64,000 nt of DNA from Raja brachyura (GCA_963514005.1 OY740804.1:5580001-5644000), one strand, 5' to 3'; positions 159 to 62,922 are shown, numbered from the stretch's first letter. The notes: generated by a model from the sequence alone, not told the origin. A program made the numbers and translations.

Positions 159-473
159 CGTAAGCTACTTGGAGATGTACGGAAAATATTGGATTGGTGG
201 CAGATGTTGTAATTCCACAGCTGTACCATCCTGTATCTCTGGAGTGAAGATCCTCCACACTCACAGTAAATATTCCTCGTGCCGTGTTGTCTGTGATTGA
301 CACTCTTCTTCTCCGTCCGTATTGCCCATTTGTTTCCACCATATCTGTACATTGGCGAGTCCGCACACGGCACCAGTATTTTGTGTATGAGTGGTACTCT
401 GCTGCATAGTGACAATCGATTGTGATCGCTCTTCCCACAACTCCTCTTACATACGTCTCTCCCCACACTGTAT
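159..473 (-). CDS. Gene 1 V-type Ig exon (CD300/pIgR/MDIR-like); gene continues beyond the left edge of the window
   Basis: TTTCAG acceptor and GTACGT donor, phase 1/1, 315 nt open. Encodes TVWGETYVRGVVGRAITIDCHY...KYWCRVRTRQC...DTGWYSCGI with the extra C-C' cysteine pair typical of CD300/pIgR/TREM V domains. Confidence 0.9.
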
Positions 474-869
474 CTGAAATGGAGGGGAGAAACTTTCAGA
501 TGGAGAGCAAATAAACTGTTTAATGGAAATAGATACATTTTAAAGATTACATGAAAGAAAACTTAAATCGTTCCATGATGTGTCATATTGCTTCACGGCC
601 AACGTCTCCGGTCTGAGTGCAGGCAGTGCTGTTGTTGTACCAGTTGTGTCAGTGTTCTGTCCCCGGGTCAGTACAACTTGGGTTCACTTCCCACTCCAGA
701 TTCCTGAGCAGAAACTGGGCTGGGATCGCAGTGCGGTACTGAGGGAGCGCGGCTGTGTTGCAGGAGCTGCCTTTCAGCAATCCCAGGCGGTGCCCGGCCT
801 CACACAAATACCTCACTTTGCTATTTCATACATTGATCATTGGAATATCTAGATCTGGCTTTCACTCAC

Positions 870-906
870 CGGGGAGCAAGGAGATTAAAAGAATGGGAAT
901 CCACAT
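870..906 (-). CDS. Gene 1 leader (signal peptide) exon MWIPILLISLLP
   Basis: ATG + 37 nt hydrophobic coding, G|GTGAGT donor in phase 1; repeated upstream of each first V exon in the window. Confidence 0.85.
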
Positions 907-2614
907 TGTTTTATCCATAGTGACAAGGCCAGCACTTGTCTGCCTGTCGCTCGGGTTTGAGCTGTCAGATTAAACCGTATCTCTCAATTAGCAATGAGGA
1001 GGAAGGGAACTGGACGTCAGATCCTGAACCACAGCGAGCCAGCAGCAGCTCGACACGTTACAGTGTGAAAGGCTCATGGTTATATTTCGCAAATGTTTGG
1101 GTCAGATAATCACAGTCATACAACAAGGAAACAGGCCCTTGTCCCAAACTCGTTAGACCAATATGCTCATCTAAGTTTTTCAAAATTGCCCCCGTTCGAC
1201 CCATATCTCCCCAAACCTTCCCCATCCATGGGCCTGTCCAAGTGTCCGTTACATGTCGTTATTGCAGGTGCTTCAACCACTTCGTCAAGTGTGATGTATT
1301 CGTAAAGATGGAGCGGCGGTTATCTCTGTACTGAGAGTCTGTTAACAGTGGGAGACTAAAAAATGCAGGAGCAACTCAGCGGGCCAGTCAGCACCTCTGG
1401 AGAAAGTGGATTGGTGACGTTTCGGGTCGGGACCCCTCATGTGAACTATAATAGTTTGGATCAATTATGATACTTAGAAGAGTAGAAACGCATAAGATGT
1501 GTACACCCCCGGATCATTCCCGCTTGATGATTTTGTAAATGGACTGGCAGATCAAAAATATAATCATTGGAACTTTTGTTTTGGCATATTACTGTTGACA
1601 AGGAGCAAAACAGGAAGCTGGCGTTAGAAAGTAGGGGCTTTTCACCTGAAATCAGCTGAGGTTAATTGGAGTTTGACCCTCTCCTCTCTGCTTCAACTCT
1701 TCAATTCAAACTTTGAAACACTATTGTCATGATATTCACATATTGAAAATGACAATTAATGGTGTAGTGGACTGTGAAGGACTTTGTCTAAAATTACCAC
1801 AGGATGGAGATGAGCTGGGAAAGCGGGATGTGGAATGTGACTGACACGTGTAATGTAACTTAAACAAGCGCGAAGTGATACACTCAGTGAAATTAAAGCA
1901 AGGAAGAATATGTATGGTGAATTGAATTTTTAACCTGTCTTCTTTGCCATTCAGAGCTAATAAATTAGCAAAGTTGTGTTCATGTACATTCTATTGGATG
2001 TTTTTTGTACATCTGCTTGCAAAGATTTAATTCTGTAGGCAACTAGTTGCATTATAATATAACCTAATATCTGGTGCTGGCTATCGTTCTGGATATGTTA
2101 CTTACAGGGGAACAGTGCAGTTTATTCGGGTTGTGTACATCTGTGGCAATATCGTTGGTAACAATGTTGTGCATCACGTGGAATCGGTGCAACACACTGA
2201 TGTGTCCGCCACTGATGTTAGCTGAGCGTTGACGACCCTCAGTAATGGATCTTTTGCCGGGAGCTATTTCCTGTTTACTTGGCCAACTAAAAACACTGCA
2301 GAGAGGCACCGACGATGCAGCAAAACAATTACATGATGTCTTCATTCGCCTTGGACCCATGACTTCTGCAAGCACCGCTCAGCTAATGGTGTTACAACGA
2401 GCTGCTCGCAAGATCCGGTTCAGAGATATGAATCTACACACCCAAGTGTCAGCACTGTAGACCAATTCAGTGTAAAGGAAGAAATGACTGTTTGAACATA
2501 TTAGATTAAAGTTCATTGCAAGCCAGCAACCACCACTAAAAACAACAGTGGCATCGAACCGATTTGTCACGAATTCTTTCACTCCAGTGATGCTGCCCGT
2601 CCGGCTGAGTTGCA

Positions 2615-59638: not shown

Positions 59639-62009
59639 ATTATGATTATGTTTAAGAAAGAACTGCAGATGCTGGAAAAATCAAAAGTAGACAAAAAATG
59701 CAGGAGATTATGATTATGATCATTTACATTTCAAATGCTGAGGGCAATTTTTCAACACAATTTACATGAAGATAGTTGATTTAATTTAAGTGCAGTTTAC
59801 CGAGGTACAGTGAAAGGTGTTTGTTGTGTGCTAACCAGTCAGTGGAAAGACAATGCATAATTACAATCGAGCCATCCACAGTGTACAGCTACATGACAAA
59901 GGGAATGACGTGAATAACGTTTATATACAGACAGTGAAGTCCAATCAAAGATAGTGAGAGGGTCTCCAATGCGATAGATAGTAGTTCAGGACTGCGCACG
60001 AGTCGTGGTAGGATGGCTCAGTAACACCTCGGAAGAAGTTGTCCCGGAATCTGGAGGTGTGCGTTTTTACACTTTTGCCGTGTAACTCCACGCAGACAGT
60101 ATCCCAGTTCAGGATCGAACCTGCGTCTCTGATGCTCCACCGCTCAATCACCGCGCCACTGTGCTTCCTCAGTTAATCAAAATATATATATTTAAAATCA
60201 GATTTATACATGGCCATTGTTCCTAATACATTCTTTTAAATTGAACACAAAGTACTGGAGTAATTCAGTGGGTCAGGCCCAGAAGATATGGGTAGAGCAA
60301 CGTTTCGGGTTGGACCCGCTGAGTTACTCCATTCAGTACTTTGTGTGTACGCAAGATTCTATCATCTATAGGGCCTTGTTTCTCCACTAGTTTTTTTTTG
60401 TTGTAAATTCCAGGTTTATTTCATAGCCAGAAGTTCAACTCTTCTTCTGATGTGATAGGATTTGAACCCATAATCAATTGTGGGATCATTCACACAGAAA
60501 TCAATGCCAAGCCATTATTTCTAATTGATTTAATTTCTCAATTTTTGATTAATTCTGGTGTCCTCCATTTATGTTGAATCAGATGTGGAGAAGTATCCTG
60601 ACCCGAAATGCCTGAGCCGCTGAGTTCCTCAATTAACTTGTTTGCTGATGAATATTAAATAAACTGCACCGCACCAAGTCACAACTCAGTTATTTTCCAC
60701 GACCTTGACTAATCGTAGCCTTTTGCCTGGAATAAAATGGTACACAATACAATAATAAATCCTTGTTGTCACCAAACCAGTAGCTTCAAATCCAAAACTG
60801 CATTTTTTTAATCTGTCAGTTTATGTCTTCCTTTCCCCCTTTCATGTTTTTGTGTGTTCCTCTCGGTGTTCCTCTCAGTGTGCTTGCAACGTTCTGTAAG
60901 AAACAAGCAGCTAGGTTGATTCACTGAAAATCAGCACCTGGAATAATGATGGAACAGTGTATCTTTAGACCCACAGAAGGGCGCAACTTATACAGGTACG
61001 GTTATTTTCCTCTTCTAATTAGTACCTGGAATGATGATCTATCAATATCACAAAAAAAATTACAAGCACTATTCATGATCCCCAAGTGGACCCTTTACCT
61101 CTCTTGGACTGTGTGTTGCATTTGTCTTATCTGATTGTTCAATATCTTTGTATAAATGCAATGTACAGGCCTAGAGATGAAACATTTGGACAATCATATT
61201 AATTCCACAGATTAACTTCCATCTGACTAAAGAAATTCCTCCTCACCTCCTTTCTAAAAGAGCACCGTTTAATTCTGAGGCTATGACCTCAGATCCTAGA
61301 CTCTCTAACTAATGGACACATCCTTTCCACATCCACTCTATGCTTTTCATTATTCTGTAAGTTTCAATGAGGTCCCCCCTCAACCTTCTAAACTCTAGCG
61401 AGCACAGGCCCAGTGCTGTCAAATGCTGACAATAGAGAATGCGTAAAGATATCAGAGTCCATTTAACCACGAGAGTGCTAACATAATGCTCACTGACAAG
61501 ATTTAATTAATACTCAAGATTTGTCTCCCAGCACTTACTTCTCAAGCCTAGCAAGCCCTGTATAAAGATTCATAGAACAGGAAGAAGGCAGCAGGAAGGT
61601 TGATCATGAGACTAGGCTGAGTCTGCACAAAACATCTGGCCGGAAGAGTTTCAAACTTCTGTTTCCTCAAAAAAATTGACGTGTGTGTGCTAGGAAATAC
61701 ACAATTCAGTAAAGAATGTCAATGCAGTCAATAAATAGAGGAATATATTTGACAGTTTACTGCAAAATAAAATTACGAGTTAAAATCTTGGCAGAAATGG
61801 ATAACAACAATCCAAGTGAGGGCCTTATACTCAATGGTGAAATGAGGAACAACATGTTCTCAGTTACTCAGAACAGAAATGTGGATTAAGACAGAAGGAA
61901 CCTGGATTGTGAAACCACCATGAGCTCGTTGCTAGAGACTGACCTTCAGAGTTTGAATTTCACAATGTGTAATTGACAATTTAAAAAAAAAAATGTTTTT
62001 CTTATTTTG

Positions 62010-62315
62010 ATGGGTGGCACAGTGGTGCAACTAGCTGAGGTACAGGCTTACAGAAGAGAGTGACCAGGGTTCGATCTGACCTCTGGTCCTGCCTGTGTGG
62101 CGTTTGCACGTTCTCTGTAAGACAGCGTTGGTTTTCACCGGGTCTTCCGGTTTCCAGCTACATCCAAAAGACTTGCAAGTTTGTAAACTAATTGCCCTCT
62201 GTAAATTGCCCTGTGTGGTAAGCAAAGTGTGTAGACACTTGTGTTTGAACGTGTGATAGATGGTCGGCGCGGATTGATTGGGTGGAAAGACTTGCTTCCA
62301 TGCTACATCTCTGAA
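62010..62315 (+). mobile_element. tRNA-derived V-SINE, degenerate
   Basis: ggcacagtggtgcaac head, ggttcgatc B-box, ccgggtcttccggtttcc core. Confidence 0.6.
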
Positions 62316-62885
62316 CAAATCATCAAATAATATAACATAATGCAATCATGTAGATTAGAGCCACAGGTGAAGCAGGCAATCACTTCAATTACCCTCAATT
62401 CCTTAGACATTACCAATCCTGATGACATCCTGGTGATTAATCCTGATGATTAATCCTGCCTCGTTCATCTTCTGTCGGTCAATTAAAGTTGGATTCCTTT
62501 TTGTTCGTTGAATGCAACGAAGAGGACTTTAACCTCATAGAGTGATACAGTGTGGAAACAGGCCCTTTGGCCCAACTTGCTCACACCATCCAACATATCC
62601 CAGCTACACTTGTCCCACCTGCCTGCGTTTGGCCCATATCACTCGAAACCTGTTCTCGCAATGTATCTGTCCAATGGTTTCTTAAACGTTGGGATAGTCC
62701 CTGCCTCAACTACCTCCTCTGGCAACTCATTCAATACTGAGGGAAAATGTTACCCGTCAGATTCCTTTTAAACCTTTTCCCCCATCACATTAAACCTATT
62801 CAAATATTTGTTAACAAAAAAAAACTATGTTCATTTTCTGGAAAAGTTATAAAATAGTAAATACTGATGCCTAACAGTTACTCAC

Positions 62886-62922
62886 CGGGCAGGGAACTAA
62901 TGAGAAGAATTAGAATCCATAT
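62886..62922 (-). pseudogene. Orphan leader exon with ATG->ATA (IWILILLISSLP)
   Basis: 37 nt, intact G|GTGAGT donor, in-frame upstream TGA with no rescuing ATG; no V exon seen between it and the gene 5 leader. Confidence 0.7.

Follow-up and report, generated by a model that had tools for sequence, protein, structure and literature searches.

The window analyzed here is a 64,000-nucleotide (nt) stretch of the Raja brachyura genome (GCA_963514005.1 OY740804.1:5580001-5644000), and it contains five genes for immunoglobulin (Ig) superfamily receptors that resemble the MDIR family of skates. All positions are those of the window. Coding features were called from a six-frame listing of open reading frames (ORFs) together with Pfam, exon borders were set with batoid proteins as guides, and comparisons were made exon by exon rather than with joined spliced proteins as queries. 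All coding features of the five genes lie on the minus strand and include five V-set exons and four full C2-type Ig exons (Table 1). AG/GT splice sites and consistent phases were found throughout the modelled exons, and the five leader exons, reading MWIPILL..LP, end in a phase-1 donor (G/GTGAGT or G/GTAAGT). An original prediction, made from the sequence before these comparisons, had described five minus-strand genes sharing leader, V and C2 modules. The five leaders and the strand stand, but only the leader and V exon of gene 1 fall within the window, and gene 4 has no C2 exon and no more than a remnant of its V exon.

The V exons match Pfam PF07686 (V-set) at E values of 1e-9 to 2e-14, and the C2 exons match Ig_2, Ig_3 and Ig_C17orf99. 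When compared with solved structures, the V exon matches domain 1 of pIgR (5e-48) and CD300f/CLM-1 (3e-22), with weaker matches to TREM2, NKp44 and TIM, while the C2 exon of gene 5 matches FCRL5 (PDB 9loc, E 1e-46). Each intact V exon holds four Cys residues (IDCHY...KYWC...RQC...YSCG), which correspond to the canonical B-F pair plus the extra C-C' disulphide of CD300/pIgR-type V domains. A full-library search with the gene 5 V exon returned 2640 relatives, the closest of which are all from rays and skates; the best matches, at 83-93%, are from Leucoraja, Rostroraja and Amblyraja, and the close relatives are all batoids, as expected of a cartilaginous-fish host.

Using the Rhinoraja counterpart of gene 5 as query, the named clearnose-skate proteins MDIR2 (ABC86796), MDIR3 and MDIR5 (ABC86800) were retrieved; MDIR1 and MDIR4 were not among the proteins retrieved by the protein searches. 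For MDIR2 of the clearnose skate (Raja eglanteria), PMC3031540 cites Cannon et al. 2006 (Immunogenetics 58:362). The sequence comparison that the original prediction had called for bears out its MDIR assignment, with gene 5 at 74-83% to MDIR2 and gene 3 at 79-90% to MDIR5, or 79-91.5% in matching positions when MDIR3 is included. The ectodomains are modular, the V, C2a, Vb and C2b types recurring in gene 5 (V-C2), gene 3 (V-C2a-V-C2b) and gene 2. Three kinds of end are present: immunoreceptor tyrosine-based inhibitory motifs (ITIMs) in gene 5, an exon for a transmembrane segment with Arg (Arg-TM) in genes 3 and 4, and potentially anchorless forms in genes 2 and 3. The exons, their phases, the damage to some of them and the orthology to MDIR2, MDIR3 and MDIR5 can be read directly from these alignments. 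Given the exon-by-exon agreement of gene 5 with MDIR2 and the positional agreement of gene 3 with MDIR5 and MDIR3, the window is very probably a part of the skate MDIR multigene family, in which gene 5 is of the inhibitory type and genes 1-4 belong to an MDIR3/MDIR5-type lineage that has been duplicated and has decayed.

Table 1. Exons, relics and transposable elements of the MDIR cluster, in window positions.
Feature	Position	Strand	Remarks
Gene 5 leader exon	57483..57519	-	MWIPILIVCSLP; phase-1 donor CCCG/GTGAGT
Gene 5 V-set exon	54540..54859	-	320 nt; Pfam V-set; 83% to MDIR2; domain itself an intact open frame
Gene 5 C2 exon, FCRL5-type Ig	52617..52925	-	Phase 1-1; Pfam Ig_2/Ig_3; 74-75% to MDIR2
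Gene 5 stalk exon (TGYSCVTST...)	51002..51119	-	118 nt; phase 1 to 2
Gene 5 TM exon, uncharged	49636..49730	-	RPIMIIVLSVTGVLLVGLFACLLLYLRNRHR; 83% to MDIR2 TM
Gene 5 short cytoplasmic exon	48837..48883	-	SKSNTHHRARATGTQ
Gene 5 tail exon	47227..47544	-	Four Tyr motifs, then stop; 81% to MDIR2 tail
Gene 3 leader exon	28785..28821	-	
Gene 3 V1 exon	22196..22516	-	Intact; phase 1-1
Gene 3 C2a exon	19932..20252	-	Intact; 79-81% to MDIR5 C2a
Gene 3 V2 exon	18563..18880	-	Intact; 91.5% to MDIR3, 84-85% to MDIR5 V2
Gene 3 C2b exon	15725..16045	-	Intact; ends in phase 1; 80-81% to MDIR5, 82.7% to MDIR3
Gene 3 Arg-TM exon	14023..14113	-	SWKVGRW-type; 90% to MDIR5 TM
Gene 3 last exon	13364..13411	-	RRNDSEPRHSTHELH, then stop; 15 codons, Tyr-free; AATAAA at 13161 and 13144
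Gene 4 leader exon	38354..38390	-	Intact
Gene 4 V-exon remnant	37111..37278	-	168 nt; two stops, first Cys lost, 3' half missing
Gene 4 Arg-TM exon	33111..33201	-	YISWKVGRWVFDLLLVIWSISTAVFTRGSK; open; Arg codon 33177-33179; Asp inside TM
Gene 4 last exon	32532..32579	-	RRDESESRRSAQELQ, then stop; 15 aa, no Tyr; AATAAA at 32330 and 32316
Gene 2 leader exon	9893..9929	-	
Gene 2 V exon	7582..7896	-	Intact; F-G loop reads DWYFWD
Gene 2 C2a exon	4911..5231	-	Open; YCC replaces YYC
Gene 2 C2b remnant	2579..2868	-	Stopped at codon 11; loses homology at 2615, the start of the gene 1 upstream block
Gene 1 leader exon	870..906	-	
Gene 1 V exon	159..473	-	Intact; remainder of gene before the window
Orphan leader-like exon (sixth)	62887..62952	-	ATA for ATG; consensus donor; 5.4 kb upstream of gene 5 leader
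Fossil inhibitory-tail exon, inverted	16703..16967	+	Gene 3 V2-C2b intron; VAYATL ... TVYAAVQL-stop-RKS; stops and frame shifts
Fossil inhibitory-tail exon, second inverted copy	3538..3774	+	In gene 2; E 2.6e-21
LINE reverse-transcriptase fragment	36045..37110	+	Pfam RVT_1; ends exactly at gene 4 V-exon break; repeat copies at 58.4-59.3 kb and 39.1-39.5 kb
DIRS-like retroelement	24000..28100 (approximate)	+	Gene 3 leader-V intron; Phage_integrase-type tyrosine recombinase ORF 27390-28052; reverse transcriptase/RNase H-like ORFs upstream

Gene 5 shares with MDIR2 an exon layout of leader, V, C2, stalk, uncharged TM and ITIM tail, and the 5' region of gene 5 differs from that of genes 1-4. Its neutral TM and long tail had been foreseen, as had the four tyrosine motifs, which are of the Yxx[LV] type; the gene has seven coding exons, not eight. 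Judged by the ITIM pattern [SIVL]xYxx[IVL], two of the tail motifs are canonical (IMYAAV, 47431-47448, and VTYASV, 47320-47337); TTYANL (47503-47520) resembles an immunoreceptor tyrosine-based switch motif (ITSM), and PIYGTV (47236-47253) is non-canonical, with Pro at position -2. Positions of the four-motif tail are conserved in proteins of Rostroraja, Leucoraja, Rhinoraja and Pristis. Both MDIR2 and gene 5 carry IMYAAV and a C-terminal PIY[AG][ST]V. However, MDIR2 has AARVNL where gene 5 has the Tyr-bearing TTYANL, and DTYARV in place of the canonical VTYASV; unlike MDIR2, the window copy of gene 5 is one G short near the start of the V exon. By analogy with other ITIM-bearing receptors, the tail would be phosphorylated upon ligand binding and would recruit phosphatases with SH2 domains, thereby damping activation, and coupling to SHP or SAP may be expected. 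Within the introns of gene 5, three stretches (53405-53746, 54944-55456 and 55970-57337) are high-copy repeats, covered by contigs a thousand times more deeply than the adjacent sequence in each of the four DNA runs. No Ig exon was found between gene 5 and the orphan leader-like exon upstream of it.

Gene 3 follows MDIR5 in its V-C2a-V-C2b order, in position-specific matches and in having the same 15-aa last exon. MDIR3, an inhibitory protein, is slightly closer than MDIR5 to the V2 and C2b exons of gene 3. The TM exon is 90% identical to the MDIR5 segment (SYISWKVGRWLLFLLLVIWSISTAVFTRGSK), yet its frame reads NISWKVGR-stop-LLFLLLVIW, a TGA (14086-14088) standing where MDIR5 has the Trp that follows Arg. 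Likewise, the MDIR5 stalk (HEYSCENPITSSYSAS) has no counterpart that we could find in gene 3. A motif search and low-stringency tblastn for a stalk exon in genes 3 and 4 gave only chance-level matches; one of these, HETSCS at 15110-15142, was rejected as it lacks an acceptor. Downstream of gene 3, neither a neutral-TM exon nor a minus-strand ITIM exon was found. With the TM frame stopped and no stalk exon found, gene 3 would most likely yield a secreted V-C2-V-C2 protein or nothing. Genes 2 and 3 had both been thought to possess intact ectodomains without a usable TM exon, which is true of gene 3, with its four intact Ig exons, but not of gene 2, where the C2b exon is stopped at codon 11 and cut at 2615.

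SWKVGRW occurs twice in the window, in genes 3 and 4. Both of these exons end in a phase-0 donor, and after each comes a last exon of 15 codons that lacks Tyr, with AATAAA some 200 nt beyond it. The original prediction had assigned a WKVGR-W-type TM and a 15-aa tail to these two genes. In gene 3 the motif is followed by a stop; in gene 4 the TM and tail exons are intact, but they belong to a gene without an ectodomain, and the TM has Asp where relatives have Ala or Leu. In MDIR5, whose GenBank entry we take to be cDNA-derived, the Arg-TM segment is placed after V-C2-V-C2. A motif survey of 283 retrieved relatives found a W[KN]xGRW TM in 26, with exactly 18 hydrophobic residues counted from that Trp in 22 of them; in most of the 26 the tail is 19-24 aa long and has neither ITIM nor ITSM motifs. 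At least two ITIM-like motifs were found in 76 of the 283. Because MDIR5 and these 26 relatives carry it, the Arg-TM exon is a conserved module of the family in related species. The original prediction would have been undermined had this exon never been joined to Ig exons in paralogous loci, and the MDIR5 arrangement, along with the Arg-TM motif in 26 relatives, indicates the opposite for a related species.

The usual end of the lineage of genes 1-4 would be, on the model of these relatives, an Arg-bearing TM (WKVGRW and 17 more hydrophobic residues) with a Tyr-free cytoplasmic tail of 19-20 aa. In receptors that couple to FcR-gamma, the TM helix carries an Arg at its outer end. In this position of Arg, in the approximately 18 hydrophobic residues and in the short motif-free tail, the skate form is like FCAR, GP6, OSCAR, LILRA and NCR1, although the LxRMG-type context of those receptors is unrelated to WKVGRW. 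By analogy, the Arg-TM form may pair with an Asp-bearing adaptor that contains an immunoreceptor tyrosine-based activation motif, and FcR-gamma would be a candidate partner.

The remaining genes are damaged or partial. Gene 4 has no C2 exon and its only V exon is cut by a long interspersed nuclear element (LINE); the ectodomain was lost to LINE insertion and deletion. Gene 2, at 83-85% DNA identity, is a shortened copy of gene 3 that lacks the V2 region through loss, gene 3 positions 17119-18991 being without counterpart. In its V exon the F-G loop (7582-7640) is aromatic (GIDWYFWDALTN) and sharply unlike those of gene 5 (GITTSGLDPLFN) and gene 3 V1 (GIYDSGWDTLFN).

Self-comparison of the window revealed tandem duplication blocks at 83-93% DNA identity, which fall into three sets. 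The first comprises the 5' blocks of genes 1-4 (830-2612, 9753-11450, 28640-30707 and 38226-41053), the second the 3' blocks of genes 3 and 4 (11779-15112 and 30986-34147, 85-93% identity) and the third the Ig exons of genes 2 and 3. Transposable elements identified through Pfam are located at damaged places and break points, and a gap in the paralogue alignment from 22841 to 28745 spans the region of the DIRS-like element. A Penelope-like GIY-YIG fragment and more LINE pieces are found between genes 4 and 5, and upstream of gene 5. The Penelope-like GIY-YIG endonuclease ORFs are at 41702-42145 and 12705-12968, both on the minus strand, the second lying downstream of the last exon of gene 3. 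Plus-strand ORFs are also repeated in the leader-V introns of genes 2, 3 and 4 (8418-9110, 23581-23832 and 37338-37883) and seem to belong to an unclassified repeat that the paralogues have in common; the one ORF of the three that was scanned, 8418-9107, had no Pfam match. Over 47 aa, the relic tail exon within gene 3 and the tail of the family member Rhinoraja XP_078277136 share 72% identity, at E 2.6e-21; among 20 shuffled sequences the best E value was 0.004. The relic predates these duplications.

Taken together, the genes would encode type I Ig-superfamily receptors that combine a V domain of the pIgR/CD300 type with a C2 domain of the FCRL type. They are tandem duplicates that recur every 9-19 kb or so, and genes 1-4 have a common 5' region and belong to the lineage with a V-C2a-V-C2b layout. 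We infer that such genes are expressed, bind a ligand and signal by the inhibitory and activating routes outlined above. As far as sequence and orthology go, the presence of both signalling types, the truncated copies and the tandem duplications at 83-93% support the original proposal of one inhibitory receptor accompanied by duplicated and decaying activating counterparts. Overall, the earlier observations are partly confirmed, the interpretation placed on them is supported, and the reading as a whole was largely right.

Several points weigh against this interpretation. No intact activating gene was found within the window, and gene 5 and its activating neighbours are not a tight pair, having V-C2 and V-C2-V-C2 ectodomains, respectively. 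The exon chains in R. brachyura were drawn from DNA alone, none of the six sequencing runs that hold the locus being on record as RNA. The ratio of nonsynonymous to synonymous substitution (dN/dS) in V exons is 0.9-1.7 among the paralogues, with changes concentrated in the C-C' and F-G loops; it is 1.4-1.7 between genes 1, 2 and 3 (V1), and 0.5-1.0 for C2 exons. These values fit diversifying selection and relaxed constraint equally well.

The V exon of gene 5, the only complete gene, presents a further difficulty. It measures 320 nt, as compared with 315, 318 or 321 nt in the paralogues, all multiples of three, and the paralogue alignment places a 1-nt gap 22 nt into the exon, in a run of G at 54841-54844. 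As assembled, the exon is out of frame with the leader, whose phase-1 donor is common to all six leaders, and reads VSGAVWGRTM followed by a stop. MDIR2 has VSGAVWGKDHVGG at this point, and one added G at 54841-54844 restores exactly that. An alternative donor 4 nt downstream of the leader donor (GA/GTGACA) would also restore the frame but was rejected as the main route, as it is weak in comparison with CCG/GTGAGT. Public DNA contigs were aligned to 52550-57650 to check the frameshift. Both contigs of run X5 over the site have a 1-nt insertion, and one of them (1 mismatch in 170 nt) has it in the run of G; in run X1, one of two contigs has the extra base. Runs X2 and X3 each gave a single contig with no insertion at the two reported sites among the rows listed, which also counts against an intact gene, though these contigs are about 96% identical and may represent a paralogue. 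Because contigs of X5 and X1 carry the extra G, a frame-intact form of gene 5 is present in the sampled population, and the deletion is either a homopolymer assembly error or a segregating null allele.

The stopped TM frame of gene 3 invites another reading of the Arg-TM exon. This exon requires phase 2 and the gene 3 C2b exon ends in phase 1, so a direct splice between the two is read in the +1 frame. A stalk exon of length 1 mod 3, such as the 118-nt exon of gene 5 or the one of about 49 nt inferred for MDIR5, would bridge the phases; were it absent or skipped, C2b would be joined directly to the TM exon. In gene 3 this gives (V)ISHGKWGADCSFSCL and a stop, that is, the secreted end VISHGKWGADCSFSCL. 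The +1 frame stops after 16 codons with a Cys-containing secretory end, V[TI]SHGKWGA[GD]C[SF][FI]SCL, and VTSHGKWGAGC[SF]FSCL closes three RefSeq models from two skates, one from Amblyraja (XP_032898097) and two from Leucoraja (XP_055510904 and XP_055511094). A secreted gene 3 product is plausible because these three models share the end; however, the models are automatic, and a 16-codon open frame by chance is not unlikely. That the exon is readable in two frames, and that skates make secreted MDIRs from an activating gene body, is a tentative suggestion which we consider somewhat doubtful. If true, gene 3 would be a fixed secreted V-C2-V-C2 form and not a pseudogene, since the +1 frame is open but the TM frame carries a stop.

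Less probable is a reading of the entire window as a dead margin of the MDIR family that makes no protein, with a genuine, fixed frameshift in gene 5 and with gene 3 an unexpressed pseudogene. The 1-nt deletion in the gene 5 V exon, the X2 and X3 contigs, the stopped TM of gene 3, the clearly broken genes 2 and 4, V-exon dN/dS at about 1 or higher and the heavy load of transposable elements could all be accommodated in this way. Nevertheless, the other six exons of gene 5 and the four Ig exons of gene 3 are open, with splice sites intact and the canonical Cys all kept, the tail of gene 5 retains its motifs at 81% to MDIR2, and the frame-restoring base is present in the closely matching X5 contig and in one X1 contig, all of which makes a dead locus unlikely.

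Orthology to tetrapod pIgR, CD300 or FCRL5, with a function as polymeric-Ig transporter, lipid sensor or Fc receptor, is highly improbable: the V exon does match pIgR D1 and CD300f, the C2 exon matches FCRL5 and the automatic RefSeq names of relatives are pIgR-like, CMRF35-like and FCRL5, but alternating V and FCRL-type C2 domains are seen in neither pIgR (five V-like domains) nor CD300 (single V), elasmobranch relatives including the named MDIRs stand at 42-93% as against 25-45% for tetrapod pIgR and CD300, and the tail has ITIMs and none of the sorting signals generally known from pIgR. Neither do the genes conform to CD300 proper (single V, mucin-like stalk, no C2), the complete genes here all having FCRL-type C2 exons, or to pIgR proper (tandem V-like domains, no C2, tail with transcytosis signals), as V alternates with C2 and the tail is of the ITIM type or 15-20 aa long.

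An MDIR cluster with one inhibitory gene and decaying activating-type neighbours bears comparison with the KIR, LILR and CD300 clusters, which are likewise tandem Ig-receptor genes ending either in an ITIM tail or in a basic TM residue and short tail, with birth-and-death turnover and pseudogenes; here, a fossil inhibitory tail adjoins activating-type genes. There is no orthology to those clusters, however: the MDIRs combine a CD300/pIgR-type V domain with an FCRL-type C2, and the inhibitory and activating-type genes of the window differ in domain number and 5' region. A 2006 study of MDIRs reportedly described a family with basic-TM forms, ITIM forms and forms with neither, and MDIR relatives are annotated in many elasmobranch genomes. 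The cluster is accordingly an expected member of a known family, whose three types of end and multigene nature were known already, and it reveals no new kind of system. It does show, base by base, the genomic anatomy of a family whose record, as far as could be checked, consists mainly of GenBank entries derived from cDNA and of automatic gene models. Forms of the inhibitory, activating-type and anchorless kinds are seen arising side by side in an early-diverging jawed vertebrate, and the mechanisms are visible as tandem duplication, loss of single exons, hits by transposable elements and a relic inhibitory tail inside activating-type genes. This supports the view that paired-receptor dynamics like those of KIR and LILR are old and recurrent.

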